Source: Selaginella moellendorffii (lineage: Eukaryota > Plantae > Lycopodiophyta). Taken from it: DNA of 64,000 bases. The notes under the pieces were generated by a model that saw only the letters and a program-made list of their open reading frames with translations, had not been told where the DNA came from and ran no database searches. The stretch spans positions 2,319,728 through 2,383,727 of the forward strand of contig NW_003314272.1 in the NCBI RefSeq assembly GCF_000143415.4, written 5' to 3'. A program made the position numbers and the translations under genes. Positions 312 through 35,913 of this stretch are shown one piece after another (position 1 is the stretch's first letter; every line of letters begins with the position of its first letter).

Positions 312-2400
312 TTAAATTTCCGGATATTCTAATGTGCTCAAATCGCCGCCGTCCGCCCGGGTCTCGTGGATCATCCCTCGAGCGCCTCGATTCGCGTAGC
401 TCGCTCGCTCGATGCAAGTTATGATCCTGTTGGCGAGTCTCCTCACAGCGCAAGCTCGATGCCAAGGTGCCATTTCCAAAACCTTTGGATCTCAAACAAA
501 ACAAGGTGTGAGCTATGGTGAGCTTCAGATGATTTCTCCAGGTTACCTCGTCCGAGTTGAAGCTCTCGAGGATTATCCCGCCGCGACAGGGCACCGCAAG
601 ATCCGACCAGTCCATGTCAAAAATTCCAAAGTCCTTGGAAAGTTCCTGGAGCAAAACAAGGAGTTTATACTGTCTAGAAGCAGGAGGGAAGTAATATACC
701 CGACCCAAAGGTGTTTCCGGGTCGCCAATTACTCCAAGCACATAGCCTCTATAATCAGCGTTCGATCCCTGCAGTACGAAAAATACATGAGAAATCGTAT
801 CATCAAAACCAGAACACGAACCTGTCCGTGAATCTCTAGAACTGGCGTTCCCTTCAAACTCTACACGAACGGTAAACACGATTGATCTTAGAACAATTGA
901 TGCTACCTGTCTAGACGCCCAATTCAAATACTCCTCCCAGGAGAGGTTTGGAGCGTCGCGATCAGGACGTAAAACTTGCCAGCCATAACGACGAAGTTGT
1001 CGCTCCAAGACATTGACGACCTTGGAGAACAAAGAAAAAACATTAGAAGTTCACTACAACCAGCGTAACTTACATCAAGGTTGAATTCCCGCTCGCCAGG
1101 AGCACCAGGTTCATATCCAGGATCTATCCAATGACCTGGAACGACTGTGATTCGGTCACTCTTACCAATTTCACGCGAGGATTTGAGGTATGTAGACGTA
1201 GGTAGTACTTTGTGCCTTTTTGTCTGCCAAAACAGAGACAATCACTAGACAAACTTTTAAGATAAAGTCGAAGTACCCGCTTGCTTAAGATTTGCGACAG
1301 TTTGATAGAAGCGATTTTTAGTCGAGCCGGCAAGCTGGTTGCGAAATTTCCACAAAACGCATTTGATGGAACATCTAATTCTCCAGTAGCAACCTGGAAA
1401 CCAAGTCTTATGACCAGTGAAAATCGCCACTGCCGAGAGTTTCCAACTCACCGCTTGACATGTCTTTGTGATTTTGATCCGCTTCGAGTACTGGATTGAT
1501 AAAACATCCTCTCCTTGTTGAACTAATACTCTAAACTGCAGAAAAGTTGGCAATGGTTTCCCCAAATATAAATATCTGCTTACCAGATTTGCAGCTTGCC
1601 AGTCGAGCTTTAATCTCCATTGAGGTCCAAGTGAGCCATTAACCTGTCAGAGAACTAGAACACCTTACTTAGCACACCACAAAACAATCATGCCCAAAAC
1701 CTCTACGCTTGCACATAGTTTCGCTTCGCCACCACCAGCATCAAACGTTCTCGTTATGCTCAGCGCAGGCACGGGAAAAAGCTCGACGACAGGACGCAGG
1801 GCTGCACAGCCCAACACCCTTCAATCACTAAACGATGGAAAAAGTGAAAGATCAAACCACTCGGAGAATAAAAGCTGCAGTACCTAGCTTCCCGCAAAAC
1901 AGTGACATTGGCTTGATCTTCGCATAAGCAAATGTGCGCGGGGAATCCATTCTCCAGTCCTCTTTTTTCCAGTCCTCTTTCGTCACTTTGATCCCCAAGA
2001 CAAGGGAGAGGGGACACCACTGCCATCGCCATCTTGCATCGTCGGCTGGATTACAAACTAAAAGTAAGAACCATTTGAAAGAAGAGGAGGAAAAGAACAC
2101 TCACACAAGCCCAAGCAATCTGGAAACGCAAGAGCGCGCTGGAACTTGACAAGAAATCCATTCGCGGGGCTGATCTTCGCTCCCAGCTTCCATCTATACT
2201 CCTGCAAGAGGAATTAGTCCCTATGAAAGAAAATGCGGGTATCCATTAGATCTAAGCTAGCTCACCCGCGATCGAACGCGCTTGTAGTGAACTGGAGGTA
2301 CATATAATCTGTACGGCCGAGTGAAGCATTGCTCTCCTATACAAACCTCGTCCTCCTCGTCGAACTCTGGGAGGTAGCACGGCGGCCCTTCCTCCCCCAT
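312..2400 (-). CDS. Beta-strand-rich N-terminal domain fused to an N-acetylmuramoyl-L-alanine amidase (Amidase_3)-like domain, ~465 aa, 13 exons
   Basis: GT-AG exons 2400-2266, 2201-2105, 2045-1884, 1801-1701, 1643-1584, 1535-1452, 1393-1277, 1223-1074, 1020-907, 860-822, 768-700, 645-547 and 482-312 join into one open frame. Motifs ITVVPGH...EREFNLDVVNVLERQLRRYGWQV...VLEIHGQG...GGIILESFN match the H/E/H/E pattern of Zn amidases. Confidence 0.75.
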
Positions 2401-2511: not shown

Positions 2512-4913
2512 ATGGCAATGGGCGGCAGAGCGCGCGGTGTGGCGTCCAAGCTTCGCCGCATTTCGGTCTGTGTCGTCGCATCTCTCGACCTCGTCTTAGC
2601 TCCTGTGATTGATCCGTGCAGGCTGGTTGCGAGATTGCTCCGCATTGGTGGTTTCGGCGATTGCTGACGACGGTAGGCGCTTGCCCGTGCGATATTTCGG
2701 GATCTGGCGTGTGATTTGTGCTGGCAATTCTTGTAGGATCTTCGATCGCGGCTGGCGGAACTGATTCCGGGAGAACAGGTGAGGTCACTGAGCTTTCCTG
2801 GAAAGCGGTAGATGAGCACTATCGTCTTCTCTATAGGAGCGACTGAAAAAGCTGAAAAAGGAGCATGGATCAGTTCCGCTCGGCCAAACCACAGTCGATA
2901 TGGTATGCGTTTGTTTGAGCTAGTTAGTCATATCTATGATCTCTCTATTCGCTTCAGGCCATTGGTGGAATGCGAGGGATTAAAGGCATGCTTTGGGAAA
3001 CGTCCCTGCTCGATCCTGAAGAGGTAGTCAAGGATTTATTTGTTCTTTGCTGTTTCAGCGTCCTTGGCAAACAGGGTATTCGTTTTCGGGGCTTGTCCAT
3101 TCCAGAGTGTCAAGAGAAGCTTCCAGCTGCCGTTTCCGACGGTGAACCGATACCAGAAGGACTGTTTTGGCTGCTTGTTACTGGTGAGGTAAGGCATTAG
3201 GCTTTCAAATGTTTTGACTTTCTTATACATTGTTCCCTTCAGGTTCCCAGTAAGGAACAAGCTGCGACGTTGACGAAAGACTGGGCTTCTCGTTCTGACA
3301 TTCCGGGCAAGTTCGATTACAATCTTTTTGCTTGTCTCACAGAAATGTGTTTCATTCAGGTCATGTGTATGACGTTGTGAATGCACTTCCGATTAATGCG
3401 CATCCAATGACACAGTTGACTGCTGGAGTTATGGCTTTGCAAGTAAGTGTTTGACATAGTTCAAGAACAGTTACTGAGCTCGTGCTACAGACCGACAGCG
3501 AGTTTCAGAAGGCGTATGAGAAGGGAATTCACAAATCAAAGTGAGTAGTCGTAGTTATATATATTCCTGATAATTGAGCGGTGTGTCTAGGTTTTGGGAA
3601 CCAGTGTACGAAGATTCGATGAACTTGATTGCTAGGTTGCCAGGCCTAGCGTCCTACATCTACCAAAGGTTTGCATAATTTGCAACTTGTAGTGATGCTA
3701 AATGTTTTCGCTGCAGAACATACCATGGAGGCAAGCTGATTGAGTCAAACAAGTCGCTGGATTATGGAGCCAACTTTGCTCACATGCTGGGTTTTAAGGA
3801 GCCCAAAATGTATGAGCTGATGCGCCTGTATCTTTCTATTCACAGGTTAGTCTGCTACAGTTTCCTTTGCCGTGAAATGAGGATGGCGTAATTGACTTTC
3901 AGCGATCACGAGGGAGGAAATGTTAGTGCACATACCGTGCGGCTGGTAAGTTTTTGTGATCTTCTCCAAAAATACTCTTGATGACTATTTATCTCTAGGT
4001 GGGGAGTGCACTATCGGACCCGTACCTTTCTTTTGCGGCCGGAATGAATGGTTTGGCGGGTCCATTGCATGGTCTTGCAAACCAGGTTTGAGTTTATCAT
4101 CGTGTGTTCTGGCCTGAAGTCTGAAACTCAATCAGGAAGTGTTGCGTTGGATTAATGAAGCCGTTGAAGCGATCGGAGCTGATGCTTCCAAGGAAAAGCT
4201 GACAAAATACGTAAAAGATACTTTGAATAGTGGAAAGGTCAGCTTTGTTTGGAATGAAAAAAATTTAAAAAATCAGTTGCTTAACTCTGCTGTACAGGTG
4301 GTTCCAGGCTATGGACATGCAGTGCTGCGTAAAACGGACCCTAGGTACACTTGCCAGCGCGAATTTGCACTAAAGCATCTGCCCGACGATCCGATCTTCA
4401 AAATGGTAGCCTTCAATTGTTGCTTTATTTTCTCATTTGGCCACACTCTGATCACAGGTATCCAATCTTTACGAAGTTGTGCCTGATATTCTTCTTGAAA
4501 CGGGAAAGGTAATACTCGCTATTCACGGCAATCATAATGCCCCCCTTCCAGGTGAAAAATCCTTGGCCTAACGTGGATGCGCATAGCGGAGTGCTTCTAC
4601 AATACTTCGGGTTGACTGAAGAGAAGTACGTTTTTCCTCTTTTTCCTCTCTTTTTTCTCATTAAAGGAAAAAAGGCTCTGACCACTTTACTTTTCTTCTC
4701 GCAGCTACTATACCGTGTTGTTTGGCGTCTCTCGGGCCTTAGGCGTTCTTGCACAGGTACTACCATTGTGCTTCCAAGCTCTCCAATTGACTGCTTGTAT
4801 CGTACCTTCAGCTGGTGTGGGATCGCGCACTTGGTCTTCCAATTGAAAGGCCAAAGAGCATGACCATGGGGTGGCTGGAGAACTATTGCAAGAAGCAAAC
4901 CGTGACAGCGTAA
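2512..4913 (+). CDS. CSY: Mitochondrial citrate synthase (multi-exon)
   Basis: [83 protein letters not shown]; Arg-rich presequence-like N-terminus. Confidence 0.95.
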
Positions 4914-5719
4914 GTCGACGCTCTCGAAATTTTCATTCTCGTTTTCTTTCGTGAATAACGGCCGGTGTAAAAATACAATGTGGTGATAAGGATTGACAAA
5001 TCCAATGAAATGAACAACAGGAAGAAGAAGTGAAGTGAGAGTCTCTCCGACATGGAGGTACTTGAGTCTCGACATGGAGAGGCATCATGAGAGAGAGGAT
5101 GGATTGAACGGCGTGGGATTTGATTCCTAGCTATGAAAAGCTTCGCCACCGAGGAGGCCAGCTTCACTATGCTGGCCTTTTCCATCACCGCAGTGGTCTT
5201 TTTCTCAAGAACAGCGCCGTGGAGATCCGACACCACTCCACCGAGAAAACGAAAAAGAAGAGAGCTTGGATCTTGAGTGGAGATGCGGAAAAATCTGAGG
5301 CTCGCAAAGTCACTCCTTTACTAATTTTATTTTCGCCCATTTGAACGCGAACTTTCTTCCTCTCTTTCTCGTTATAAAGCGTTGACACTGGTTAGTGCGT
5401 TGCATCTCGCCCGCGTGGCACTTGTAAGGGCTGGAGCTCCGCCACGTCAGGCAACGTAAGCCTGTGTGTAAAGGCTGGGCGAGTCCTTCACCGAAGCAAC
5501 CGGGATGGATCCTCCTCTTCCTTTTTCTTTTCGAAACTTATATCTCTTTTTGGCTATGGCGGAAACTAGGGTTTGGAGCTTTACGGTGTAACCGCTGGGC
5601 GCTGGACTATTAGGGTTGTAGGATCCGGCGATCGGCGCCTCGGGCAGCGCGACGTGTCGATCGGTAGTCTCATGAATTCGCGAGCTCAAGGAAGAGCTCA
5701 GGATTCCAGGCACTCTCCG

Positions 5720-9295
<3,576 letters not shown>

Positions 9296-10174: not shown

Positions 10175-11482
10175 ATGTTCAAAGGAATTCTATTGTTGTT
10201 CATGGTATGGACTTGTGCAGCTCTTGCATCAGGGAGCAAGACCGCTTCCAGTTCCAAGCCCTCTTGCCTGATCGGTGGCACGACCTTCAACTTGCAAGAC
10301 TACGGTGCCAAAGGTGACGGCGTCACAGATGACACGCAAGCCCTCGAGAGAGCATGGCAAGATGCATGCAAATCTCCAGACGCAACGCTTCTCATCCCCG
10401 GTGGCAAGACGTTCCTCATCGCCCAGGTCTCACTCCAGGGCCCATGCAAGCCCAACACAAAGATACGTATCGAGGGCAACATCCACGCCCCGGACGCATC
10501 CTCGTGGAGCAACTCCAACTCCGCCCCCTGGATCCAGATCAAGAACCTCGAAGGCCTCAAGGTGGAGGCAACCGGGACGCTGGACGGAAACGGCACATCG
10601 TGGTGGTCTCGGGCCTGCAAGCCCACGCCGGGGTCGACGTCGTGTAGGAAAGCCCCGACCTCGATCGAGTTCAACACGGTCAAGAACCTCCGGGTCAACG
10701 GCCTGGAGGTGGTCAATAGCCCGCGCATGCACGTTAACTTTAATGGCTGCCAGCACGTAGCCGCGCAGTGGCTGCGGATCAACTCCCCCGGCAACAGCCC
10801 AAACACCGACGGTATCCACATCACGAACTCGCAGGACGTCGTGATCAAGTACGCCATGGTTGCCGCGGGTGACGACTGCGTCTCCATCGTCGGGGGCTCC
10901 TCCAACATCGACGTGAGCTCCATCGTGTGCGGCCCCGGCCATGGAATCAGCATTGGGAGCTTGGGAGGTGGCGACGTGGTGTCCGGTGTGAGAGTCCGCA
11001 ACGCTAATCTGATTGGAACCACCAACGGAGTGAGGATCAAGAGCTACAAGAATGGGCATGGCGCGGTGAGCGATGTGAGCTTCGAGGACGTGAGGATGGA
11101 CGAGGTGGCCAACCCCATCATCATCGACCAGGCCTACTGCGACGCGCACGAGCACGACTGTGGCGCGGAGGCGGCGGCAGAGGAGGTGAGTGGCGTGAGC
11201 ATCAGTGGCGTGAGGTACAAGAACATCAGCGGTACCTCCAAGACCAAGACGGCGATCACGCTCAGGTGTAGCCAAGTTGTGGGCTGCGACGGAATCGAGC
11301 TGGACAACGTGGAGATCACTCAGGCAACCAAGGGGGCGAATGCTGATGCGAGGTGTAGCAATGCGTATGGAGTGGCGGGCAAGAATGTGTTCCCGGAGAG
11401 CTGCCTGGCGGCGCAGGAGCTAAAGTCGAGAAGAGCGAGCTCGAGCGTGCAGGCTGAAAAGGTCTCCTTGCCATTTAGCTAA
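10175..11482 (+). CDS. Secreted polygalacturonase (GH28), intronless
   Basis: Signal peptide; YGAKGDG; catalytic motifs SPNTDG, GDD, CGPGHG, RIK. Confidence 0.93.
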   Translation: MFKGILLLFMVWTCAALASGSKTASSSKPSCLIGGTTFNLQDYGAKGDGVTDDTQALERAWQDACKSPDATLLIPGGKTFLIAQVSLQGPCKPNTKIRIEGNIHAPDASSWSNSNSAPWIQIKNLEGLKVEATGTLDGNGTSWWSRACKPTPGSTSCRKAPTSIEFNTVKNLRVNGLEVVNSPRMHVNFNGCQHVAAQWLRINSPGNSPNTDGIHITNSQDVVIKYAMVAAGDDCVSIVGGSSNIDVSSIVCGPGHGISIGSLGGGDVVSGVRVRNANLIGTTNGVRIKSYKNGHGAVSDVSFEDVRMDEVANPIIIDQAYCDAHEHDCGAEAAAEEVSGVSISGVRYKNISGTSKTKTAITLRCSQVVGCDGIELDNVEITQATKGANADARCSNAYGVAGKNVFPESCLAAQELKSRRASSSVQAEKVSLPFS

Positions 11483-11766: not shown

Positions 11767-11874
11767 CACCCTACGAGCAAGAGGAAGAGGAAGAGGAAGA
11801 GCAATGCCGGGGGTGATCACAGGTAGCCACATTCCTTGCTAGCTAGGCTATGAGTGCCACCACATCTCTCGCCC

Positions 11875-14271
11875 ATGCGCGCTGCGCTCTTGACAAGGCT
11901 ATGTGCTCGTCGCCCCAGCCGCACTCCAGCAATGGCGCGACGATCAAGCAGCTCCACCACTTGCGCCAGCGGCGGCGGGGGCGGCGACGCATTCGCCTTC
12001 GTCGTCCAGAGCATCCTCTCGGCGCTCAATCCTACCGAGGTGGGTCTCAACGCCGCCGCGCTCGCTCCCTTCGCGCGCTACCTCTCCCACGACGTCGTCC
12101 TCGAGATCATCCGCCGCGCCAGCCGGAAGAAAGGCCTCGAGTTCTTCCACTGGGCTCGCTCCACCAGCGGCGCCTCCGGCTACCGCCACTCCGCCGCCGC
12201 CTACGAGTCCCTCATCGCCCGCCTCTGCGACGCCCGCGACGCCGCCGCCGCGCTCCTCCTCCTCCGCGCCATGCGCAGCGACGGCCTCCAGCCCAGCATC
12301 CACAGCCTCGTCGCGCTCCTCCGCGCCTACGTCGAGCTCGGCCAGATCGACGAGGCCGGGGAGATCTTCTGCTACGTGCGCAGTGCCGCCACCGTGCCGC
12401 CCGAGGCCTACTCGAGCATGATCGACGCCTTTGCGCGGCACCGCCGCTTTGACGACGCTCTCGAGCTCTCCCGCGAGGCGCTCTCGCGGGGCATCGCCGC
12501 CGACCACCACCCGCTGCTCTACGCGCTCTGCAAGGCGGACAAGATCGACGTCGCCGCCGGATGCTTGCAAGCGCTGCTGGATCACAACTTCAAGGTGGCG
12601 AGCGTGGATTGCAGCGTGGTGGTGGACGCGCTCGCTCGCGCGGACAAGCTGGAGATGGCGGCCAAGCTCCTGGAGAGATCGGTGGTGGAAGCTGGCGTTA
12701 AAGTCGACTCGCAGGCTTTCACGCTCCTCGCCACGAAGCTCTTCCGGCGCTCCAAGTTCTCCGAGGTGGTCCGGCTCTTCACGCTCCTGGCGTCCAGAGG
12801 CGTGGTCTATGGCGAGACCACGTACAAGCTCGTCGTGGACGGCCTTTGCGGCGCCGGGATGGCGAACCAGGCACTGGAGCTCGTCCGGGAGCTCAGCGGC
12901 GTCTACACTCCCACGCTCTTCATCTACAACGGGATCATCACGGGCTTGTGCCGGGCTTCCAGAGTCATGGACGCGTACAAAGTTCTGGAGAAGATGGTGG
13001 AGGAGTCCATCGTTCCAAACGTTTTCACGTACACCATCCTGCTCAACGGGCTGTGCCGGAGCAACAAGACGAAGCTGGCGCGCGAGGTGTTCCAGGAGAT
13101 GAAGCGAAACGGCTGCAAGCCAAACCCGATAACTTACGGCACGCTCATCCAGCACCTGAGCCGGGCCGGGGAGATCGACGAGGCGCTGCGTGTGATGATC
13201 GAGCAGCGCAGCCTGGAGCTCCCGACGGACGTGATTACGTGCACCACGATCGTCGGGGGGCTGTGCAAGGCCAGCCGGCTCGACGACGCGCTCAAGTTCA
13301 TGGAGGAGATGCGACAGATGGGAGTCCGTCCCAACGAGGTGACTTACAGCAACCTCGTGCATGGCTTCCGGCAGCACGGGGAGTTGGACCGGGTGATCCG
13401 TTTCTTCGAGGAGGAGAAGGCACGAAAAGGTGGCTCGCTCGAGGCAGCGGCGTATCCCGGCTACCTGGACGCGCTGTGCAAGGCGGGCTACCTGGACCGA
13501 GCTCGCAAGTCTGTGGAGGAGCTCCGGCAGTCCGGGGTCGTCCCGGACGTGGTGACTTACAGCATGCTCATCAACACATTCGCCCGGGCGGGCCAGTTTG
13601 ACGCTTCCTTGGAGCTGCTCGAGGACATGCGGAGGAACGGCGTGAAGCCGGACGTGGTGACTTACTCGACGCTCATCAACGTTCTGTGCAAGGAGAGGAA
13701 GTTCCAGGACGCGTTCCGGCTGCTGGAGCTCATGGAGGCGGCCGGGTCGCCGCCGAACGTCGTGACTTACAACAGCGTCATGGACGGGCTGTGCAAGAGC
13801 GGCAAGATGGACGAGGTTCACAGGGTCTACGAGATGATGCTCAAGAGCCGCTGCTCGCCGGACGTGGTGACTTACAGCATCATCATGAACGGCCTGTCCA
13901 AGGCCGGGATGCTCGACTCGGCCGTGAAGCTGTTCGAGCTTATCAAGTCAAGCCGCGAGGGGCCCGACGCGGCGGCCTACAGCATGGTTATCACGAGCCT
14001 GTGCCGAGCCGGGAAGCTGGAGGAGGCCTGCGGTATGTACCACGGGATGGAGGTGACGGTGGCCGGGGATAACATATGCCGCGCGCTCGCGGGGCTGGTT
14101 GCCGCGCTGTGTGACGCCGAGAGGACCGACTCGGCACGCAGGATTGTGGAGGTTGCGAGCGAGAGGGGCCACCGCATGACCAAGAGCGGTGATACTGATC
14201 TCGTCAAGATTGTCGAGGACCACCTCTTGGAGTCAAAAGAAGAACACGCGGATGCTGAGTGGAAAGCTTGA
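11875..14271 (+). CDS. P-class pentatricopeptide repeat protein, organelle-targeted
   Basis: Tandem 35-aa repeats (PDVVTYSMLINTF, PNVVTYNSVMDGLCK); Arg/Ser-rich N-terminus; first ATG at 11875. Confidence 0.93.
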   Translation: MRAALLTRLCARRPSRTPAMARRSSSSTTCASGGGGGDAFAFVVQSILSALNPTEVGLNAAALAPFARYLSHDVVLEIIRRASRKKGLEFFHWARSTSGASGYRHSAAAYESLIARLCDARDAAAALLLLRAMRSDGLQPSIHSLVALLRAYVELGQIDEAGEIFCYVRSAATVPPEAYSSMIDAFARHRRFDDALELSREALSRGIAADHHPLLYALCKADKIDVAAGCLQALLDHNFKVASVDCSVVVDALARADKLEMAAKLLERSVVEAGVKVDSQAFTLLATKLFRRSKFSEVVRLFTLLASRGVVYGETTYKLVVDGLCGAGMANQALELVRELSGVYTPTLFIYNGIITGLCRASRVMDAYKVLEKMVEESIVPNVFTYTILLNGLCRSNKTKLAREVFQEMKRNGCKPNPITYGTLIQHLSRAGEIDEALRVMIEQRSLELPTDVITCTTIVGGLCKASRLDDALKFMEEMRQMGVRPNEVTYSNLVHGFRQHGELDRVIRFFEEEKARKGGSLEAAAYPGYLDALCKAGYLDRARKSVEELRQSGVVPDVVTYSMLINTFARAGQFDASLELLEDMRRNGVKPDVVTYSTLINVLCKERKFQDAFRLLELMEAAGSPPNVVTYNSVMDGLCKSGKMDEVHRVYEMMLKSRCSPDVVTYSIIMNGLSKAGMLDSAVKLFELIKSSREGPDAAAYSMVITSLCRAGKLEEACGMYHGMEVTVAGDNICRALAGLVAALCDAERTDSARRIVEVASERGHRMTKSGDTDLVKIVEDHLLESKEEHADAEWKA

Positions 14272-14786: not shown

Positions 14787-15653
14787 CTACTCCTCGCTCA
14801 GAAGCCTCGTGAGAACCGGAGCCAGGATCTGAGGATGCGTGACGTGCGGGAGGTGTCCGCGGGCATCCAGGATCTCGAGCTCCCCTCCCAGCTGCTGGTG
14901 GAGATACTTGGCCACGGCTTGCGGCACCGCGAAATCCTCCTTGGTCTGGATAACATGGCACGGCACAGTGACGAGCGACAGTACTTTGCGAAGGTCGCTC
15001 TTGAAGATGGTCTCGGCTATGAGCAGCATGAAGTCGGGCTTTACGACGGACAGGAAGGCCATGTAGCGCTGGATACATTCTTCGCTCGCCTCGGGTCCCA
15101 GAGCGGCAGGGGCGAATCCTTGCAGCCACGAGGCATGGTCTCGCTTGATCGCGGCCAGGAGCTCGTCAACGTCCTGCTGCTCGAAGCCTCCCTCGTAGCC
15201 AGCGTCATTGATGTACCTGGATGGAGCAAGATCAATCGAGGACTTTGAAGGGAACTTCGAAGAACAAGAGTAGCAGTAGTACCTGGGCGAAGCTCCGAGG
15301 AGGACGAGCTTGGAGAAGAGGTCGGGGCGAGCGGCGGCGGCGAGGCAGCCAATCAAGCCCGACATGGAGTGGCCGACGTAGAGGCACTTGCCGAGCTGGA
15401 GCTCGGACAGGATGGCGATGAGATCCTCGGCAAAGCCTTCCATGCTCCGGTACCTGGACGCATCAAAGTCATCGTCGCTAGTAGCTCCTCCATGGCCCCG
15501 GAGATCGTAGAGCAGCACGGAGTAGCGCGGCAAGAGATGCGGGAGGAGCCCCTCCCACGCGCCTTGGCTGGCTCCAAAGCCGTGGGAGAGGACCACGAGC
15601 TCTCGGCCTTGGCCGAGGATCCGGACGTTGTGGATCTTCGCCATAGTTGACAT
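14787..15653 (-). CDS. KAI2/D14-family alpha/beta hydrolase (divergent, DDK-like), one intron 15217-15282
   Basis: HNVRILG, LSHGFG, GHSMS (Ser), ASPRY, EDFAVP (Asp), GHLPH (His); intron at the conserved SPR|Y position. Confidence 0.92.
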   Translation of the reverse strand: MSTMAKIHNVRILGQGRELVVLSHGFGASQGAWEGLLPHLLPRYSVLLYDLRGHGGATSDDDFDASRYRSMEGFAEDLIAILSELQLGKCLYVGHSMSGLIGCLAAAARPDLFSKLVLLGASPRYYCYSCSSKFPSKSSIDLAPSRYINDAGYEGGFEQQDVDELLAAIKRDHASWLQGFAPAALGPEASEECIQRYMAFLSVVKPDFMLLIAETIFKSDLRKVLSLVTVPCHVIQTKEDFAVPQAVAKYLHQQLGGELEILDARGHLPHVTHPQILAPVLTRLLSEE

Positions 15654-15747
15654 CGTTCGAGCTTGGAAATGCAAACGCTCTAGACTTCTTCTCCGGAAAG
15701 CTTGGGCTCTTGGAACTTGGAAAATGCAAAGCTCTAGAGTGGTACAC

Positions 15748-17253: not shown

Positions 17254-17380
17254 CACGTGTCCAAAGCACGATTCAACCAAAATTTTCCACGTGTTGGCGC
17301 CCGACTCACCAACATGTTGACACGTGCCAAAGTGCGATTCACCAGACATTGCGCCACGTGTCAGCCCGCGATTCACCAAT
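17254..17380 (-). promoter_or_regulatory. Array of four G-box/ABRE elements in 33-34 bp degenerate tandem units
   Basis: CACGTG at 17254, 17288, 17321 and 17355, each followed by CGA(T/C)TCA(A)CCA. Confidence 0.7.
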
Positions 17381-20300
17381 AATCTCCACACGAGCATTTC
17401 CCGCCCTCGAAGACATGAAACCTCCTGGCGTCGCGGCACACGATCCGGCGCCGCTCCATCCGCGACGCGACGGCGCTCACCGCGTGGCAATCGCCGCACA
17501 CGCGCAGGTTCTTCCCGATCCGGATCGTCGTCCCGGGCGGCGAGCTCACCAGCGCGCACGCCATGGCGATCCTCTCGCTGTGCGAGCACAGGACGAAGCC
17601 CCTCTTGTCCTCCTCGCCAATGTTGTGCGCGATCCCGCCCACATCACCGCTCATCATCCAGCCCCTCATCTCCGCGAGCTTGGCCGCGATCGCGCGGTCG
17701 CCGCAGCCCACATCTCCAGCCCCAAACCGGTGGAGGATCCCCGTTTTATCATCGATCCACCAGCTCCGCCCACTTCTCCTCGGCGCGCCGCAGCTCCTCC
17801 CCAGCTCCTCGATCCGCGACTGCTCCTCCCACATACCCAAGCTCCCGTAGAGATTCGCCATGAGCGAGAATGCCGCGCCATCGCCCGGATCGATCGCCCG
17901 CAGCGCGCCAAACGCGACCTCCGCCACGGCCGCGTTCTTCCACCGGCAGCACGCGGCCATCACCGCCGTCCACGTGGCCGTGTCGGCCTCGTACGGCATC
18001 CCCCGTACGGCGGCCACCGCGGCGTCCAGCCGGTTCGCGCGCGCCAGCATGTCCACCGTACACGTGTAGTGCTCCACGCCCGGGCGGAGTCCGTACTTCG
18101 TCTCCATCGCGCCGAGGAAGCCATGGCCGAGCTCCACCATCCCGGCGTGACTCAGCGCCGTGAGCACGCACAGGCAGCTCACCGCGTCGGGCGCGAGCTC
18201 CTCGTCGCGCATCGCGTGGAAGAGCTCCGCCACCGCGCGCCAATCGCCCTGGCGGGAGTGCGCCGCCATGAGAGCGTTCCAATCGATCAGCCGCCTCCTC
18301 GCCACGGCCTCGAAGCAGCGCCGCGCATCGGTCGTGCTGCCGCATTTGCCATACGCGTCCACCAGGCAGCTCTCCACCACGATCAGGAGGCCGTGCCGCG
18401 AGATCTCGCCATGGATCGCCCGGCAGCCCCTCAGATCCACCAGGCTCGAGCACGCCTTGAGCGCCGCCACGAATCCGGCACCGCCCTCCACCGCTAAAAA
18501 TCTCTCCTTGATCCGCCAGAAGAGCTCCAGAGCCAGCTCCCCTTCGTTGTTCTCAGCGTAGCCCCGGACAAGCGAAGCACACGAAGCCGCGCTGTGGAGC
18601 TTCATCGCGTCAAACACCCCCCGGGCGCTTGTCATGCTCCCACACTTCGCGTAGAGATCGACCACCGTGTTTGCAACCACGAGGTCGAGCTCGCCACCAC
18701 CACCAAACTTCGCTCGAGCTCGTGAGTGGATCGCCATGGCCTTGTCCAGCGACCGGAGCTTCACGAACTTGTCATCGTCGATCTCCTTGCCAGCTTCTTT
18801 GGCAGCGGCAGCAGCACAGGCCTTGAGCACAGCGACGAAGGTGACTGGATTTGGCTCGAGCTGGAGTTGGAGCTCCATACTTTCGAACAGATCTAGCGCC
18901 ATCTCTTCGTCTCCATTCTCCGTGCAGCCGTTGAGCATGACCGTCCACGATACTGTGCTGTGAGCCTCCATCCTGTCGAACACCATGCGGGCGTCTAGCA
19001 AGCTTCCACACTTGGAGTAGGCGTCGACCAGAGTGCTCTCCAAGGTGATGTCCAGCTCAACCTCGCATCTCGCAGCTTCCCTGTGGATCTCCATGCATTT
19101 CTCCAGGCTCTCCAGTTTCGCCACCTTTGCGTCGGTGCTTTCTCGTGCAGCCAAGCCGATGCACGCCTTGAGAGCAGCGACGAACGCCGGAGAACTCGTT
19201 TGAGCGCTGCTTGAGCCGAATATCGCAGCAAAGAGATCCAGTGCTAGCCTCTCCTCTCCGTTGTCTACGTATCCCAGCATCAGCACAGTCCAAGGCACTG
19301 AATCTCTCGGCCTCGCCCTCTCCAAAACTCTGCGAGCGTCTTCCAAGGCTCCACACTTCGCGTACATGTCGATCAGCGTGCTTGTGACGAACTTGTCCTT
19401 CTCAAACCCCCTGTCCCTTGCCTGAGCATGAATGCTAGTGCCTCTTTCCAGAGCCTCCCCCTTGAGAGGCCTCCCATTCCCGTCGTGAGTCGTTGCTAGA
19501 GTTGCGCAAGCCTTGATAGCAGCAACAAAGCTGGTATCATTTGGTGCGAAATCTTCTGTCAACCGAGCCAGTAGATCGAAAACCAGGTGAGTTTCACCGT
19601 TCTCTACGTATCCCAGGATCAAAGAGTTCCACGACACAACGTCCCTGTGTTGCATCCTGTCAAAGACGAGGCGAGCGTCAAGCATGCTCCCACATTTCCC
19701 ATACAAATCTACCAGAGAGCTTTGCAGGAAGATGTCCGATAAGTAGCCACTGCTTGCCGCCTGGGAATGAATAGCCATGGCCTTCTCCAAAGCTCTGATC
19801 CTGACAGTCCCCCTGTTATCCATTCCGACTAGCTTGCCTTCCTCCTCAAGTGCCAGAAACGAGCAAGCCTTGACTGCTCCGGCGAAAGTCGGCGCATTTG
19901 CTAGCGTTTCCATGTGTAGAAACAGCTCAAGCGCGAGCTCAGGCCTGCTGTTCTCTGCGTAGCCCAGGATCAAAGCCGTCCATGAAACCACGTCGTGGAA
20001 ATCCATCTTGTCAAACACGGCCCGAGCGTCCCTCAAGCTCCCACACTTTGCATAGACATCGACCAGGGTGCTAGACAAGAAAACGTCGTCACAACCAGCG
20101 CTAGCAACATGAGAATGAACAACCATACCTCGCTCCAGAGACTTCAGCTTGACCAGCTCCCCGGCTACCGGCTTGCCATATTCGTCGCCTGCCAAAGAAG
20201 CACAGATTTTGAGCACGCTGACAAAAGTTCGAGGACATGGAGGACAACCTTGATCTCTCATGGCTACGTAGAGCTCGAGCCCCAGCTCCCCCTGCCCGTT

Positions 20301-21068
20301 CTCGCCATATCCGAGCAGCAGCGAGTTCCACGAGACAACGTCGTGGCACTCCATCCGGTCGAAAACTCGCCGAGCATCACTCATGCTGCCACACTTGGAA
20401 TACACGTCCACCAGTGTGTTTGCAACGAAGATGTCCTCCAAACACCCTTTCAATCCCGCTGCCTGGGAGTGAATCTCCATTCCTTTGCTCAGAGACTCCA
20501 GCTTCACACCAAAAGCTTCTACTTCTTCTTCATCGTTGTTGTCTTGCTCCTTTCCACGGTCTAGAACTTGTGTGATCGATTCTTTTGCCGCGAGGATGGA
20601 GCAGGCCTTCATAGCAGCACCAAAAGTTCGAGGATTTGGAGAGTATCCTTGTTCTTGCATGGCCGAGAAGACCTTCAAGGCCATCTCTGCTTGGCCATTC
20701 TCCACATATCCCTGTATCAGTGCGTTCCACGACACCACTGTCTTGTGTAGTCCCATCCCCGCGAAAACCTTTCTAGCGTCCACCAGGCTTCCACACTTTG
20801 CATACATGTCCACCAAGCTGTTCGCCACGAAGGCGTTCGTCTCGAATCCTCGGCCTCCTCCAGATAATCGGGCATGAAGTCTCCTCCCTCTCTCCAAATC
20901 CCTGGATCGGCTACAGGCTTTGATCTCCGCAAGGATCTCGGCGATGGATCTCGGAGATAATTCGAGAGAGCTCGTTCGTGAGCTCGAGAAGCGGACAGAG
21001 AATGAAGAGCTGCTACTGGAAAATGTAAGACTCACATTGTGATTCCAGCGCTTCCAGGACGATTGCAT
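17373..21068 (-). CDS. PLS-class PPR-DYW RNA editing factor (WW-type DYW, elongated L motifs), 1231 aa
   Basis: Repeated LVDMYAKCGSL..AR.VF / VVSWN motifs; GRSWW in place of the PG box; HSERIA...CGDCH; terminal CSCGDYW. Confidence 0.95.
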   Translation of the reverse strand: MQSSWKRWNHNVSLTFSSSSSSFSVRFSSSRTSSLELSPRSIAEILAEIKACSRSRDLERGRRLHARLSGGGRGFETNAFVANSLVDMYAKCGSLVDARKVFAGMGLHKTVVSWNALIQGYVENGQAEMALKVFSAMQEQGYSPNPRTFGAAMKACSILAAKESITQVLDRGKEQDNNDEEEVEAFGVKLESLSKGMEIHSQAAGLKGCLEDIFVANTLVDVYSKCGSMSDARRVFDRMECHDVVSWNSLLLGYGENGQGELGLELYVAMRDQGCPPCPRTFVSVLKICASLAGDEYGKPVAGELVKLKSLERGMVVHSHVASAGCDDVFLSSTLVDVYAKCGSLRDARAVFDKMDFHDVVSWTALILGYAENSRPELALELFLHMETLANAPTFAGAVKACSFLALEEEGKLVGMDNRGTVRIRALEKAMAIHSQAASSGYLSDIFLQSSLVDLYGKCGSMLDARLVFDRMQHRDVVSWNSLILGYVENGETHLVFDLLARLTEDFAPNDTSFVAAIKACATLATTHDGNGRPLKGEALERGTSIHAQARDRGFEKDKFVTSTLIDMYAKCGALEDARRVLERARPRDSVPWTVLMLGYVDNGEERLALDLFAAIFGSSSAQTSSPAFVAALKACIGLAARESTDAKVAKLESLEKCMEIHREAARCEVELDITLESTLVDAYSKCGSLLDARMVFDRMEAHSTVSWTVMLNGCTENGDEEMALDLFESMELQLQLEPNPVTFVAVLKACAAAAAKEAGKEIDDDKFVKLRSLDKAMAIHSRARAKFGGGGELDLVVANTVVDLYAKCGSMTSARGVFDAMKLHSAASCASLVRGYAENNEGELALELFWRIKERFLAVEGGAGFVAALKACSSLVDLRGCRAIHGEISRHGLLIVVESCLVDAYGKCGSTTDARRCFEAVARRRLIDWNALMAAHSRQGDWRAVAELFHAMRDEELAPDAVSCLCVLTALSHAGMVELGHGFLGAMETKYGLRPGVEHYTCTVDMLARANRLDAAVAAVRGMPYEADTATWTAVMAACCRWKNAAVAEVAFGALRAIDPGDGAAFSLMANLYGSLGMWEEQSRIEELGRSCGAPRRSGRSWWIDDKTGILHRFGAGDVGCGDRAIAAKLAEMRGWMMSGDVGGIAHNIGEEDKRGFVLCSHSERIAMACALVSSPPGTTIRIGKNLRVCGDCHAVSAVASRMERRRIVCRDARRFHVFEGGKCSCGDYW

Positions 21069-25138: not shown

Positions 25139-26863
25139 TTAAAATGTTTTGTGTTGGAAACTATTTGGGCGAGGTTCAGCCAGATTCAGCTCACTCGTGG
25201 TATAGATGCTGGACAATTGGACATATGAAGAAGCGTCTCCTGGATCCAAGTTGCCGAGGAACTTTGCAGCGCAGGCTCCGTTCTGGAGATCCCGGTGACT
25301 CGTCGACGCACCCAGCAGGCTTCTCCACTCCAAAGCGTCCGGGACGAACGGCATGCTCGCGATAAGCTCTTGAGCAACTTCCAAGTATCCGGCTCGTCCG
25401 AAGAGATCAACCAGGCAGCAGTAGTGCTGCTTGGTGGCCTGGATCTGGAAGTCGAGCAGCATCGCCAGGAAGTGTGACGTCCCGGTGGAGACTTTCCCGG
25501 CGTGGCTGCAAGCTAGGAAGACGGACAGGAAACAGGACTCGTCCGGCATAGCTACCAGCTTCATGGAGTCGAAGAGATCGAGAGTGTCGCGGAAGTGGCC
25601 TTTCTGGGCGTAAGCAGCGAGCATTGCGCTCCAGGACAGGGTGCTCGGCTCCAGCATGGTGTCAAACACTCTCCTGGCTTTGCTGATATGCCCGTTCAGG
25701 GAGTACGCTGATAAAAGGGCGCTCCAGGAGAGGGAGTCTCTACGCGGCATCCCGGCAAAGATGGACGTGGCCTCGTCGAGAAACCCCTTTTGGGCATAAG
25801 CCACGAGCAATGTGGTCCAGGACACAAGATCCCACTCGGGCATTCTCTCAAAGGTGAAGATGGCTTCCTCCAGCCGGTTGTTTTGTGCGTAGGCCGCCAG
25901 CATTGAGTTCCAAGTCACGAGGCTCCGCTCAAGCATGCCATCAAAGAGCTCCTTGGCAGTGTCGACGTCTCCACTCTCGGCATTAGCAACGAGCATGGTG
26001 GTGGCGGAGAACAAGTCCCACTCGGGGCTCTTTAGAAACAGCTCGCGGGAACTTTGGAGATCGCCGCTCGCAGCATAGACGCTCAGCATTGCGTTCCAGG
26101 TGATAAGGTTTCTCTGAGGGATTCGATCAAATAGTTTCTTCGCCTGAGTCATTTTCCCGTGCTGGGCATATAGCGCCAACATGGCAGTCCATGTCACCAG
26201 GTTTTTCTCCACCATGTCATCAAAGAAACTTCTCGCGCGGACAACGTCCCGTTTGTTCGTGTGTGCAGACAGGAGCCCGTTGAGAGCCAATTGGTTCCAC
26301 TCGGGCATCTTTCGAAAGATTTTGTAAGCTTCCTCAAGACGCCCGGATTGGGCATATGCAACCAGCATGGCATTCCACGTCACTTGGTTTTTTTGTGGCA
26401 TCCAATCAAAAATATTCTTGGCCTTCTCAAGATTTCCATGCCTCGAATATGCAACCAACATGGCAGTCCAGGTTACCAAGTTCTGCTCTGGCATTTCGTA
26501 GAACAGATAAGTGGCCTCATCAAGATGCCCATATTCGGCATATGCAGTTAGCAATGCATTCCAAGACACTAGGCTCTTTTTGGGCATTTCATCTAAGAAG
26601 GCCCTTGCCTCGCTCGTATTCCCGTTTCTAGAGTAGGCATACAACATCATGTCCCACGAAAAAGAATCTCTGATTTGCATGGAGTCGAATATCCGGCGGG
26701 CATTCTCCACACTGCGGCATCTGCCATACATTTCAATAAGCTTGTTTGTGAGGAAAGTGTCGTCCTCTCGAAAGAGAAGGTGACGAGCACGAGAATGGAT
26801 GTCTAGGGCTGCGGACAAGCTCGTGCATTCACGTATCGATTCCAAGCATTGGCTCCTGTTCAT
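25139..26863 (-). CDS. PLS-E class PPR protein with an SS-motif array
   Basis: Tandem ~31-aa MP..(N/D)LVTW.AML.AYA motifs; E motifs (HYCCLVDLFGRAG, SYVQLSSIY); no DYW. Confidence 0.92.
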   Translation of the reverse strand: MNRSQCLESIRECTSLSAALDIHSRARHLLFREDDTFLTNKLIEMYGRCRSVENARRIFDSMQIRDSFSWDMMLYAYSRNGNTSEARAFLDEMPKKSLVSWNALLTAYAEYGHLDEATYLFYEMPEQNLVTWTAMLVAYSRHGNLEKAKNIFDWMPQKNQVTWNAMLVAYAQSGRLEEAYKIFRKMPEWNQLALNGLLSAHTNKRDVVRARSFFDDMVEKNLVTWTAMLALYAQHGKMTQAKKLFDRIPQRNLITWNAMLSVYAASGDLQSSRELFLKSPEWDLFSATTMLVANAESGDVDTAKELFDGMLERSLVTWNSMLAAYAQNNRLEEAIFTFERMPEWDLVSWTTLLVAYAQKGFLDEATSIFAGMPRRDSLSWSALLSAYSLNGHISKARRVFDTMLEPSTLSWSAMLAAYAQKGHFRDTLDLFDSMKLVAMPDESCFLSVFLACSHAGKVSTGTSHFLAMLLDFQIQATKQHYCCLVDLFGRAGYLEVAQELIASMPFVPDALEWRSLLGASTSHRDLQNGACAAKFLGNLDPGDASSYVQLSSIYTTSELNLAEPRPNSFQHKTF

Positions 26864-33303: not shown

Positions 33304-35913
33304 ATGATTCCTTCCTCTTGTAGCATCATACGCCCTCGCAATCTCCCCCAAGCTTTCGCCTCCCGTGAATTGTGGTGTCTGGCGGAAGTGATCGATCGTC
33401 TGGATGATGGCGCCGCCGCTGACTGGAACACCTGCGCCTGGATACTCCGCCAGTGCGCCGCGGAGCTCGCGCTAGAGCAGGGACGCCGAGCGCACTCTCG
33501 GATCGCGCGATGGGGCCGCGACACTGACACCCATCTTGGCAATCTCCTCGTCCAGATGTATGGTAGCTGCGGATCCCTGCGAGAGGCCATCGAGGCCTTC
33601 CAGCGGATCAGTGCGCCAAACGTCTACTCGTGGAACATCCTCGTCACGCAGCTCGTCCGGAATGGCGACCTCGATCTTGCCACACGCGCGTTCCACCGTG
33701 CTCCCGCCAGGAATCTCGTGTCTTTCAATCTGCTTCTCACTGCACACACACGGCAGGGGCTGATCGGCGAGGCGCGAAGGATCTTCGATGCCATGGCCGA
33801 AAGAGATGGTAGCTCCTGGAACATCATGATCCAGGCGTACTCCAGCAGTGGCGATTTGGAAGAGGCGCTTGTCCTCTTTGGCTGGATGACCCGCCGAGAC
33901 GTGATCTCTTGGAGCACCGTGATCACCCTCTACACCCGCGCTGGAGGAATCGATGTGGCGGTCCAGATGTTTGACAAGATGCCCCAGAGAAACGTGATTG
34001 CGTGGAACATTCTGATTGCGGCATTTGCCGAGGAGGGGGATCTGGAGAAGTGCCAGGAATTCTTTACAGCCATGCCGCAGCGGAGCTTGATTTCCTGGAA
34101 CTCGCTGATGCAAGCGTGTGCGCTGCATGGTAAACTGGATTTAACACTAGCTTTGCTCGATAGGATCCCACAGCAGGATAGTTACTCGTGGAATGCAGTG
34201 ATCTTAGCTTATTCCCAGTGCGGGTATCTTGCTGAATCTCTGGCGATGGTGGAAACTGTGCCCCAAGAAAGTTCTGTTGGATTCAACGTGGTCATGAATG
34301 CATATGCTCAAGCTGGTGATCTCCTTCGAGCTCGTCATATCTTTGATCTCATGCCTGAAAAGAACGTTGCTGCCTGGAATGCCATGATCCAGGCGTATGT
34401 GCAGAACGGGCATCTGGGAGACGCCAAGGCACTGTTCGATCGAGCCGGAAAGAGAAACGCCTTGACCTGGACTTTGGCGATCGGTTTGTTCTCGCAGCAA
34501 TCAAGCAGCGAAGATCTGGTGGATCCGTCCTTAAGGCTCGCTTTTGAGAGGATGCCAAGTCACGACACTTGTGCGTGGAACATGATGCTCCAAGCTTCTT
34601 CTCACCGGGATGCCGGAGCAGCCAAAGATCTCTTCGACAAGATACCAGCGCGAGACATTGTGTCATGGACGGCGCTCATCACAGCCTTGGGCCATAGCCA
34701 GCAGAGCTCGAGCGCGGAGCTCGTGTTGAGCAAAATGCCGCAGGTGTCGGAGATCTCCTGGAACGCTCTCCTCTCGGCCCACGCTCGCGAACGATGCTCG
34801 CCATCGATCGAGAAGGACCTTCACGGGGCCTGGAGCATCTTCAAGAACAGGATGGAGAGGAGGGACGATCTCTCGTGGACGATAATGGTATCCGCCTTCG
34901 CGGACTCGTCCACGCCTGAGAAATCTCGCCGGGTCTTCGATCGAATGCCACAGTGGAGCTTGCTGTCGTGGAATGCGCTGCTACGATCTTACGTCCAGGC
35001 CGGTCTCATCACAGAGGGAGTGTGGATCTTCTCGCGTGCCATGCCTCAGCGCAACAGCTTCTCCTGGAACATCCTCATTGCGGCTCTCTCTCAGAGCAGC
35101 CGCCTCGGCGATGCGAGGGAGCTCTTTGCCGCCATGCCCGCTCGTAGCATTGTGTCGTGGAACTCGATGATCCAGGCGCTGGCCCTCAATGGCGAGCCAC
35201 GGGCCGCCATCGCGCTTTACTGCGGCATGGACCAGGAAGGCATCCCTCCCAGTGATGCCACCTTTGCGAGCATCCTCGAGGCGTGCTCCATTGCCTCGGC
35301 GCTCGAGCAAGGCATGGAAATCCACCGGGATATCGCCATTGCCAATCTGGTGATCAAGGCTTCGCTCGCAAGCGCACTCGTCAACTTCTATGGCCAGTGT
35401 GGCGGCGGCCTGGATCGAGCCCGGGAGATCTTCCACGGGGCTCCTCCTGCAGCGGTGTCGGGGTGGAATGCGATGGTCGCAGCGCTGGCGAGGCATGGGC
35501 ATGGCCGTCAAGCGGTGGAGCTCTTCATCCGGATGCTGCTCGAGGGAATGGAGCTGGACAGTGTCGCATTCCTGGGAATTCTCACTGCCTGTGGCTACGC
35601 GGGGATGGTGGAGGAGGCGAGGGAGCTATTCGTGCTTATGGCGGCGCATGGGATCGCCGCTGGAGCCGAGCACTACCACTGCCTAGTGGAGGTGGTGTGC
35701 CGGGCGGGGGAGCTCGAGCGAGGTGTGGAGCTGACTGTAAGCATGCCTTTCCATCCGGGCGTGATTCCATGGAACATGATACTAAACGTGTGCAGCACTG
35801 TTCTGGTGGATGGGAAAGTTGGCGCCTGGGTTGGGGGCGAGATTATGTTGCTGGAACCCGTGGAGTCTGCGCCGTATGTGATGCTCTCCAACCTTTCCAC
35901 TGCCTGCATTTAG
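33304..35913 (+). CDS. PLS-E class PPR protein with an SS array, 869 aa
   Basis: Tandem MP.R..(V/I)SWN motifs; E motifs (EHYHCLVEVVCRAG, PYVMLSNL). Confidence 0.92.
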   Translation: MIPSSCSIIRPRNLPQAFASRELWCLAEVIDRLDDGAAADWNTCAWILRQCAAELALEQGRRAHSRIARWGRDTDTHLGNLLVQMYGSCGSLREAIEAFQRISAPNVYSWNILVTQLVRNGDLDLATRAFHRAPARNLVSFNLLLTAHTRQGLIGEARRIFDAMAERDGSSWNIMIQAYSSSGDLEEALVLFGWMTRRDVISWSTVITLYTRAGGIDVAVQMFDKMPQRNVIAWNILIAAFAEEGDLEKCQEFFTAMPQRSLISWNSLMQACALHGKLDLTLALLDRIPQQDSYSWNAVILAYSQCGYLAESLAMVETVPQESSVGFNVVMNAYAQAGDLLRARHIFDLMPEKNVAAWNAMIQAYVQNGHLGDAKALFDRAGKRNALTWTLAIGLFSQQSSSEDLVDPSLRLAFERMPSHDTCAWNMMLQASSHRDAGAAKDLFDKIPARDIVSWTALITALGHSQQSSSAELVLSKMPQVSEISWNALLSAHARERCSPSIEKDLHGAWSIFKNRMERRDDLSWTIMVSAFADSSTPEKSRRVFDRMPQWSLLSWNALLRSYVQAGLITEGVWIFSRAMPQRNSFSWNILIAALSQSSRLGDARELFAAMPARSIVSWNSMIQALALNGEPRAAIALYCGMDQEGIPPSDATFASILEACSIASALEQGMEIHRDIAIANLVIKASLASALVNFYGQCGGGLDRAREIFHGAPPAAVSGWNAMVAALARHGHGRQAVELFIRMLLEGMELDSVAFLGILTACGYAGMVEEARELFVLMAAHGIAAGAEHYHCLVEVVCRAGELERGVELTVSMPFHPGVIPWNMILNVCSTVLVDGKVGAWVGGEIMLLEPVESAPYVMLSNLSTACI

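Follow-up and report, generated by a model that had tools for sequence, protein, structure and literature searches.

A predicted outer-membrane-type beta-barrel joined to a divergent candidate peptidoglycan amidase in Selaginella moellendorffii and other green lineages

In mosses, ferns, lycophytes, streptophyte algae and some gymnosperms, peptidoglycan lies between the two envelope membranes of the chloroplast and division depends on it, but little is understood of how this wall is breached to let the outer envelope constrict. A gene near the start of a 64,000-nucleotide stretch of the Selaginella moellendorffii genome (RefSeq assembly GCF_000143415.4, contig NW_003314272.1, positions 2,319,728 to 2,383,727; hereafter the window) raises the question of whether an enzyme held in the outer envelope could make the cut. 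An earlier note, written from the letters alone, had proposed that the product of this gene fuses a beta-barrel of the outer envelope to an amidase. Our computational analysis predicts that residues ~46-250 form a closed 12-stranded antiparallel barrel of outer-membrane type and that residues ~270-445 are a divergent zinc N-acetylmuramoyl-L-alanine amidase. We give a probability of about 0.6 to the full mechanistic reading, in which an outer-envelope barrel would hold a peptidoglycan amidase in the intermembrane space, where it would cut the plastid wall.

Plastid peptidoglycan must be cut from its outermost side so that the outer envelope can constrict (Miyagishima 2014, PMC4015805), and a dedicated search found Ami-type amidases in cyanobacteria and only DipM in photosynthetic eukaryotes (PMC4015805). 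The family described here is a candidate plastid-wall amidase missed by motif searches because it is so diverged, and its predicted architecture suggests how the cut could come from the outer-envelope side. Beyond DipM, later work added MltB- and VanY-type hydrolases. A literature search by concept and by gene identifiers found the family undescribed, the work of Utsunomiya et al. 2021 on moss peptidoglycan hydrolases not being covered; as the earlier note had suspected, we found no paper on a barrel-amidase family or on a plastid barrel-amidase. A 2026 preprint that catalogues 16,586 barrels of the chloroplast outer envelope makes no mention of amidase or peptidoglycan. We regard the architecture as a new combination of a known enzyme fold with a known class of membrane-barrel fold, the barrel being an orphan in sequence.

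We threaded the S. moellendorffii protein XP_024529816.1 (465 amino acids (aa), annotated 'uncharacterized protein LOC9658903 isoform X1') through the minus strand of the window. The spliced translation of positions 312-2400, stop codon included, was identical to this protein residue for residue, and comprised 13 exons, in phase and all with GT-AG borders, separated by introns of about 45-85 nt (Table 1). The N-terminal span marked by the earlier note, 1277-2400, is exactly exons 1-7, or aa 1-252. Pfam and NCBIfam searches with the translations of single exons gave no match, because introns split the domains. The true gene model was reached by using the longest raw open reading frame (ORF; 283-1032), part of which is intron read-through, as a query that returned four relatives. 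The window is nuclear DNA of this lycophyte, as its very short introns show.

Barrel and amidase lie in one frame in the RefSeq model and within one complete ORF in relatives from more than 25 genomes and in de novo transcripts of other species, among them three Trinity/MMETSP transcripts. Two older Selaginella models, EFJ30253 (305 aa) and EFJ24880 (346 aa), are shorter; both begin within the barrel, at aa 110, and also continue into the amidase. RefSeq isoform X2 (430 aa) exchanges the conserved N-terminal 46 residues for a different short N-terminus and is identical in the rest; the residues that it loses hold the acidic start, a Cys-x4-Cys hairpin and the PP..Y motif. A second haplotype copy of the gene, LOC9657049, differs at 12 of the 465 residues.

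The N-terminal half

The barrel proposal rested on 12 short segments in which hydrophobic and polar residues alternate, and all 12 are present in the order given. In the single sequence the alternation is modest: the mean 180-degree hydrophobic moment has a z-score of 3.0 against 1000 shuffles, and seven segments exceed the threshold where 3.6 are expected (p about 0.05). At the level of the family it is convincing. Over 27 members, hydrophobic residues (Leu, Val, Ala, Ile, Phe and Trp) make up 74% of one strand face and charged residues 8%, while the opposite face is 26% hydrophobic and 35% charged, with more Arg and Lys (25%) than Asp and Glu (10%) and much Ser, Gly and Thr. The hydrophobic face spans four to six alternate positions in every strand, and aromatic residues stand close to strand ends (W49, W174, W180, Y47 and F71). 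There is no hydrophobic helix, the maximum Kyte-Doolittle mean over 19 residues being 1.23. The N-terminal half as a whole is basic (pI 9.2), as outer-envelope proteins (OEPs) generally are according to the 2026 preprint, and its start is acidic, with nine acidic residues and one basic residue among the first 30; this acidic start is conserved across the family and makes a cleavable transit peptide unlikely, and outer-envelope barrels typically lack one.

We ran AlphaFold2 (AF2) twice, on the full-length protein and on the N domain alone, with shallow alignments of 27-32 sequences. The full-length model had a mean predicted local distance difference test score (pLDDT) of 79.4 and a predicted template-modelling score (pTM) of 0.71; for the N domain alone the values were 78.2 and 0.67, with block pLDDT up to 93. 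Both models contain the same 12 long strands, of 7-14 residues each, joined mostly by tight hairpins into one uninterrupted meander, and each of the 12 alternating segments coincides with one of these strands. The models show neither a soluble beta-sandwich nor disorder, two of the outcomes that the note had named as contrary to its proposal. The N-terminal extension was modelled as a small hairpin (residues 18-21 and 24-27) at low confidence (pLDDT 40-64).

When the N domain was compared with the PDB using Foldseek, the top 50 matches were nearly all transmembrane barrels. Porins of the KdgM/NanC type (VhGalP, 8xua; KdgM, 4pr7) were the best structural neighbours, with probabilities of 0.99-1.00 and target-based template-modelling scores (TMt) of 0.46-0.54. 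Specifically, 8xua matched with probability 1.00, a query-based score (TMq) of 0.40 and TMt of 0.46; a designed 12-strand transmembrane barrel (9fdg) gave 0.41 and 0.54, and FapF (5o68) gave 0.47 and 0.46. Other neighbours included Omp33, OMPLA and general porins. No structure with an AMIN domain appeared in this top 50, and no match of LolA or lipocalin type ranked comparably. KdgM/NanC porins are monomers of 12 strands whose pores, lined by basic residues, let acidic oligosaccharides through. Unlike the Selaginella protein they are bacterial and carry no attached enzyme, and the resemblance does not extend to sequence, with an identity of 6-8% and no profile or Pfam match.

Searches by sequence returned only the family itself. 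The N domains of 27 members matched no Pfam family at E-values up to 10 (AMIN included), and their profile found no meaningful match among PDB sequences. Against 1.84 billion representative proteins the profile produced 47 matches, each a family member or a fragment; the amidase is present in every full-length match, and there was no intact stand-alone barrel, barrels without amidase occurring only as fragments or broken models. In terms of sequence the barrel is an orphan, with no relative that these searches detect.

The earlier note had likened the N-terminal half to the small plastid outer-envelope barrels OEP21 and OEP24. OEP21 is a chloroplast outer-envelope solute channel with an NMR structure; the pea protein is 12-stranded and positively charged inside, and its two termini lie in the intermembrane space (PMC10279527). 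The Selaginella domain shares with it the number of strands, a strongly basic non-lipid face and the absence of a cleavable transit peptide, so that the analogy with OEP21 is apt. Homology is another matter: no sequence relationship to OEP21, OEP24 or OEP37 was found in Pfam (E up to 10), among PDB sequences or among the 1.84 billion proteins, and OEP21 is absent from the top 50 Foldseek matches. OEP21 also differs in being a stand-alone 21-kDa pore, while the protein described here adds a 45-residue N-terminal extension, a conserved 18-residue connection and a C-terminal enzyme.

The direction in which the hydrophobic face points separates a membrane barrel from the main alternative, a soluble barrel with this face inward, which would bind a ligand or lipid (lipid II or undecaprenyl, acyl chains, muropeptides) and would target or regulate the amidase. 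Alternation alone cannot separate inward from outward. R67, R149 and K203, three conserved basic residues on the hydrophobic face, could form a buried anion site like those of fatty-acid-binding proteins, a plug could be provided by the N-terminal extension, and Foldseek gives a weak match to a lipocalin-like lyase (4tq2; probability 0.89, TMq 0.25). However, the top structural neighbours are overwhelmingly transmembrane barrels and have higher TM-scores. Closed 12-strand barrels, moreover, reportedly cannot be filled by inward-pointing side chains, a result ascribed to Murzin, Lesk and Chothia in 1994. Such a barrel would be too wide for Leu and Val side chains to fill, and a hydrophobic interior would therefore need a plug or a ligand; the one segment that might act as such a plug, residues 1-45, is modelled at low confidence, is replaced in isoform X2 and is absent from some orthologues. 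From this argument of geometry, the hydrophobic face should point outward.

Two further properties speak indirectly for a membrane barrel. The face rich in Arg, Lys, Ser and Gly resembles, by analogy, the pore linings of OEP21 and of the KdgM/NanC porins. In addition, the connections follow the polarity of outer-membrane proteins (OMPs), in which turns on the periplasmic side are short and conserved and loops on the far side long and variable. On the termini side the connections keep a constant length and are conserved (S2-S3, 18 aa, 74% identity; S4-S5, 9 aa, 69%), the 18-residue S2-S3 connection being the exception to the rule of short turns, while the opposite loops vary from 0 to 43 residues (S3-S4), 0 to 15 (S7-S8) and 9 to 35 (S11-S12), with 27-32% identity. 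The S2-S3 connection ends in exon 3 with ..DDARWRWQ.., in which W83 and W85 are invariant. Taking these points together, we consider the soluble barrel unlikely.

The amidase half and its family

Pfam Amidase_3 (PF01520) was matched by 22 of 26 family members, all below the curated threshold (best E-value 0.0011). In the AF2 model the C-terminal half is a compact alpha/beta domain with block pLDDT mostly 68-97, and Foldseek assigned it an Amidase_3-type fold with probability ~1.0 and TMt of 0.41-0.56: the matches were AmiC (4bin), LytH (7tj4, TMt 0.56), AmiC2 (5emi, 0.54), CwlD (7rag), Ami1/Rv3717, AmiA and 4rn7. By this comparison the catalytic fold is that of the cell-wall amidases E. coli AmiA, AmiB and AmiC, Nostoc AmiC2, S. 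aureus LytH, C. difficile CwlD and mycobacterial Ami1/Rv3717. The likeness covers a compact catalytic domain of ~175 aa and the order of its elements, namely Gly-His after beta1, Glu at the start of helix 1, His after beta3 and Glu in the last strand. The difference lies in the N-terminal module, which in Selaginella is the predicted barrel and not an AMIN domain, a signal peptide or a lipobox.

Four residues presumed to bind zinc or to act in catalysis do not vary across 32 sequences: H283 (after beta1), E296 (at the start of helix 1), H351 (after beta3) and E403 (in the last strand). H283 and E296, in the exon 8 motif V-V-P-G-H283-W-I-D286-P-G...G-A-P-G-E296, are the first two presumed zinc ligands; in an hhalign alignment of only 38 columns and low probability they pair with H196 and E211 of E. 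coli AmiC, which we take to be zinc ligands. The roles of H351 and E403 were assigned by their place in the order of secondary-structure elements and not by structural alignment of residues. E403, the presumed catalytic Glu, lies on strand 400-406 in ..G-G-x-I-x-E-S-F-N... The enzyme looks catalytically competent but sits on a branch that has diverged strongly. For its hallmark motifs PGHWIDPG and EIHGQG no prokaryotic counterpart turned up in 185,579 bacterial and archaeal species, each represented by one genome; the sole match to PV[LVI]EIHGQG was set aside as chance, being an ORF (2782-3189) antisense to a better glyoxalase/VOC-like gene in a Dehalococcoidia metagenome-assembled genome.

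Only 11 residues separate beta3 from beta4, which apparently leaves no room for the autoinhibitory helix of AmiA, AmiB and AmiC, and any control must then come from elsewhere. That the conserved S2-S3 connection or the Cys-x4-Cys N-terminal extension exerts it is speculation on our part.

Word-based and profile searches yielded about 45 relatives. All are annotated as 'uncharacterized' or 'hypothetical', and no Pfam domain had been precomputed for any of them. The family is represented in lycophytes (Selaginella, Diphasiastrum), ferns (Ceratopteris, Adiantum), mosses (Physcomitrium, Sphagnum), liverworts (Marchantia, Riccia, Calypogeia), zygnematophytes (Closterium, Mesotaenium, Spirogloea), gymnosperms (Ginkgo, Taxus), the prasinophyte Pycnococcus and an MMETSP alga. 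The family has members in moss, liverwort, fern and zygnematophyte proteomes, where the earlier note had suggested looking for the fusion. No angiosperm, red alga, glaucophyte or bacterium was among the relatives found. In a quick maximum-likelihood tree, prasinophytes fell outside on long branches, zygnematophytes formed a grade and embryophytes a clade (100% support), which splits into bryophytes on one side and lycophytes, ferns and gymnosperms on the other. This family tree follows the species tree, which means vertical descent in single copy going back at least to the streptophyte ancestor. Because the orthologues in Physcomitrium (XP_024400487.1) and Marchantia (Mp4g21500) are single-copy, the hypothesis is directly testable there.

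The range of the family agrees with the reported retention of the plastid peptidoglycan pathway (PMC10784329, PMC12681378); most angiosperms are without the complete set of peptidoglycan genes (PMC10784329).

Mechanism and alternatives

In the mechanism that we propose, the protein would be synthesised in the cytosol, with no cleavable transit peptide, and would enter the plastid outer envelope in the way of other OEP barrels. The even number of strands places both ends of the barrel on one side, and with the topology of OEP21 both would lie in the intermembrane space. The amidase, its linker and the conserved barrel connections would then face the peptidoglycan, and the variable loops the cytosol. 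The amidase would strip peptide stems from the glycan at the outer side of the wall, and this might link wall splitting or remodelling to the outer envelope as plastids divide or grow. What is inferred here comprises insertion into a membrane, the organelle, the orientation, the substrate and the role in division. If the mechanism is true, a member that carries an enzyme and has no bacterial relative in sequence joins the short list of plastid outer-envelope barrels.

Bacteria offer several parallels. OmpA consists of an N-terminal outer-membrane barrel followed by a C-terminal peptidoglycan-binding domain in the periplasm. The logic is the same, an outer-membrane barrel with a wall-directed domain on the periplasmic side, but OmpA has eight strands, its binding domain is non-catalytic and there is no homology. 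In E. coli, hydrolase systems tethered to the outer membrane couple its invagination to the splitting of the wall. AmiD and NlpD (which activates AmiC) likewise organise wall cleavage from the outer membrane; these are lipid-anchored, however, AmiD is an Amidase_2 enzyme, and neither is fused to a barrel. Inverse autotransporters (intimin/invasin) have an N-terminal 12-strand barrel and pass a C-terminal passenger to the far side. The order of domains and the number of strands are the same as in the Selaginella protein, but inverse autotransporters are not among the top 50 structural matches, and nothing found here shows export of a passenger through the barrel. We consider it doubtful, and somewhat less likely than the soluble barrel, that the basic lumen exports the anionic products of the amidase (peptide stems, muropeptides) to the cytosol, or that the barrel threads the enzyme across the envelope as an inverse autotransporter would. 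Were either true, wall cleavage, product export and envelope constriction would be coupled in one polypeptide; the family would supply the long-missing plastid-division amidase and the first enzyme-bearing beta-barrel of the plastid envelope, a module invented by eukaryotes.

Every part of the barrel-amidase interpretation that could be computed is supported, and of the refuting outcomes named in the earlier note none that could be computed was observed. Several observations nevertheless weigh against an outer-envelope peptidoglycan amidase. On the side of the barrel, the Foldseek E-values are weak (1e-3 to 6e-2), as is expected because there is no sequence similarity, the TM-scores are moderate (0.40-0.55) and the AF2 models derive from few sequences. 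Closure of the barrel and the orientation of its faces are argued from the Foldseek neighbours and from geometry. R67, R149 and K203 sit on what would be the lipid face; all three lie three to four residues from the termini-side rim, beside the invariant W49, and in our reading they are placed like an interfacial girdle, which would itself favour a membrane barrel. By eye, the last strand has no convincing beta-signal. No universal beta-signal is reported for OEPs (the 2026 preprint cited above), and we dropped this signal as a criterion.

On the side of the amidase, aa 253-450 score 17.7 bits against a curated threshold of 27 (E-value 0.004) and cover model positions 1-86 of 174, and the family profile found no amidase among PDB sequences, where phmmer likewise gave no meaningful match. 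As to distribution, a few angiosperms are reported to have a full set of peptidoglycan genes (MacLeod et al. 2023), yet no angiosperm member was found. Finally, a variant without the barrel, in which the amidase follows an apparent, highly charged coiled coil, occurs in GC-rich contigs from marine metagenomes, and the barrel is therefore not obligatory for the enzyme. On a TARA scaffold this variant occupies positions 6001-6888; its N-terminal part is rich in Glu, Arg and Ala and resembles a coiled coil, and its C-terminus, G-C-S-x-S-G-C-P-R, is common to three prasinophyte members that do have the barrel. The ORF upstream of it was considered as a separate barrel and rejected, since it is not a barrel.

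A barrel-amidase might also act on something other than plastid peptidoglycan, be it in another membrane such as the mitochondrial outer membrane, against bacteria or on a different amide substrate. Sequence does not predict whether a beta-barrel goes to plastids or to mitochondria, and the amidase domain is very divergent. But the metal and catalytic residues of Amidase_3 are invariant, the members belong to the green lineages named above with no angiosperm found among them, and a gene for defence would be expected to show expansion and turnover where this one shows single-copy, vertical descent. We judge such a role improbable, below both the soluble barrel and the exporting barrel.

It is very improbable that the N-terminal half is a pair of AMIN-like beta-sandwiches that target the wall, as in AmiC of E. 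coli and cyanobacteria. Amidases of the AmiC type do carry beta-rich AMIN domains at the N-terminus, and AmiC (4bin) is the best Foldseek match of the full-length model. That match has an rmsd of 16 A over 357 columns, however, and is driven by the catalytic domain; the single uninterrupted meander of 12 strands in the models and the N-domain comparisons with Foldseek and Pfam contradict an AMIN identity, which we rejected. The least credible explanation, that the annotator joined two adjacent genes, could appeal to the short older models, but these themselves run from barrel into amidase, and the in-phase exons with canonical splice sites, the single ORFs of relatives and the restriction of amidase-free barrels to fragments or broken models leave it next to no credit.

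Features of the window

Table 1. Parts of the barrel-amidase gene and protein, and other features of the window. Strands (S) and domains are predicted.
Feature	Positions in window	Strand	Residues (aa)	Remarks
Barrel-amidase gene, all exons	2400-2266, 2201-2105, 2045-1884, 1801-1701, 1643-1584, 1535-1452, 1393-1277, 1223-1074, 1020-907, 860-822, 768-700, 645-547, 482-312	-		GT-AG threading
Exon 1	2266-2400	-	1-45	N-terminal extension: acidic start, then C-x-G-x-x-C-F..P...Y-x-P-P..Y (family alignment)
Exon 2	2105-2201	-	46-77	S1 (46-56, invariant W49), S2 (60-71)
Exon 3	1884-2045	-	78-131	End of S2-S3 connection, S3 (90-100), S3-S4 loop, S4 (114-123)
Exon 4	1701-1801	-	132-165	S5 (133-140), S6 (144-153), most of S7 (156-167)
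Exon 5	1584-1643	-	166-185	S8 (171-182), W174 and W180 on hydrophobic face
Exon 6	1452-1535	-	186-213	S9 (186-192), S10 (196-206)
Exon 7	1277-1393	-	214-252	S11 (211-222), variable S11-S12 loop with short helix, last strand S12 (237-250)
Exon 8	1074-1223	-	253-302	Linker with helix (261-268), amidase start, strand beta1; Pfam Amidase_3 match begins here
Exons 9-10	822-1020	-	303-353	Helices alpha1/alpha2, strand beta3, invariant E-I-H351-G-Q-G (presumed third zinc ligand)
Exons 11-13	312-768	-	354-465	Remaining amidase, strand 400-406, C-terminal helices, disordered tail
Alternating segments of the earlier note			47-56, 60-69, 90-98, 115-122, 130-139, 144-151, 159-166, 174-180, 186-190, 197-207, 212-221, 238-249	
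AF2 strands S1-S12			46/49-56, 60-71, 90-100, 114-123, 133-140, 144-153, 156-167, 171-182, 186-192, 196-206, 211-222, 237-250	
P-type cation (Ca2+-type) ATPase	5573-9292	+		Several exons, after citrate synthase
Family-28 glycosyl hydrolase	10175-11479	+		Polygalacturonase-like
PPR ORF	11854-14268	+		Long, intron-less; one of five within 30 kb
Alpha/beta hydrolase	14790-15674	-		
PPR ORF	17376-21068	-		Long, intron-less
PPR ORF	25142-26863	-		Long, intron-less
PPR ORF	33304-35910	+		Long, intron-less
PPR ORF	40204-41583	+		Long, intron-less
Dof-type zinc-finger ORF	56831-57589	+		Pfam Zn_ribbon_Dof; apparent tandem with next
Dof-type zinc-finger ORF	58179-58517	+		By eye, C-P-R-C...Q-P-R..C..C...W-T-G-G
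Tandem-repeat array	60662-60850			12/24/33-nt repeats
Tandem array	63711-64000			12-nt unit (TCCATCTCGGAC), ~25 copies, runs off window end

A citrate-synthase gene on the plus strand (about 2512-4915; Pfam Citrate_synt on one exon) stands head to head with the barrel-amidase gene. The putative start codons of the two are only ~110 bp apart (2400-2512), which points to a very short shared promoter or overlapping 5' untranslated regions. Among the pentatricopeptide-repeat (PPR) ORFs, that at 17376-21068 is of the RNA-editing type, with an E motif and a DYW deaminase domain at its end. Base composition varies along the window: 12-14 kb has 65% G+C, while AT-rich intervals with 31-37% G+C lie at 36-38, 42-44 and 58-62 kb, and in the last of these A strongly exceeds T.

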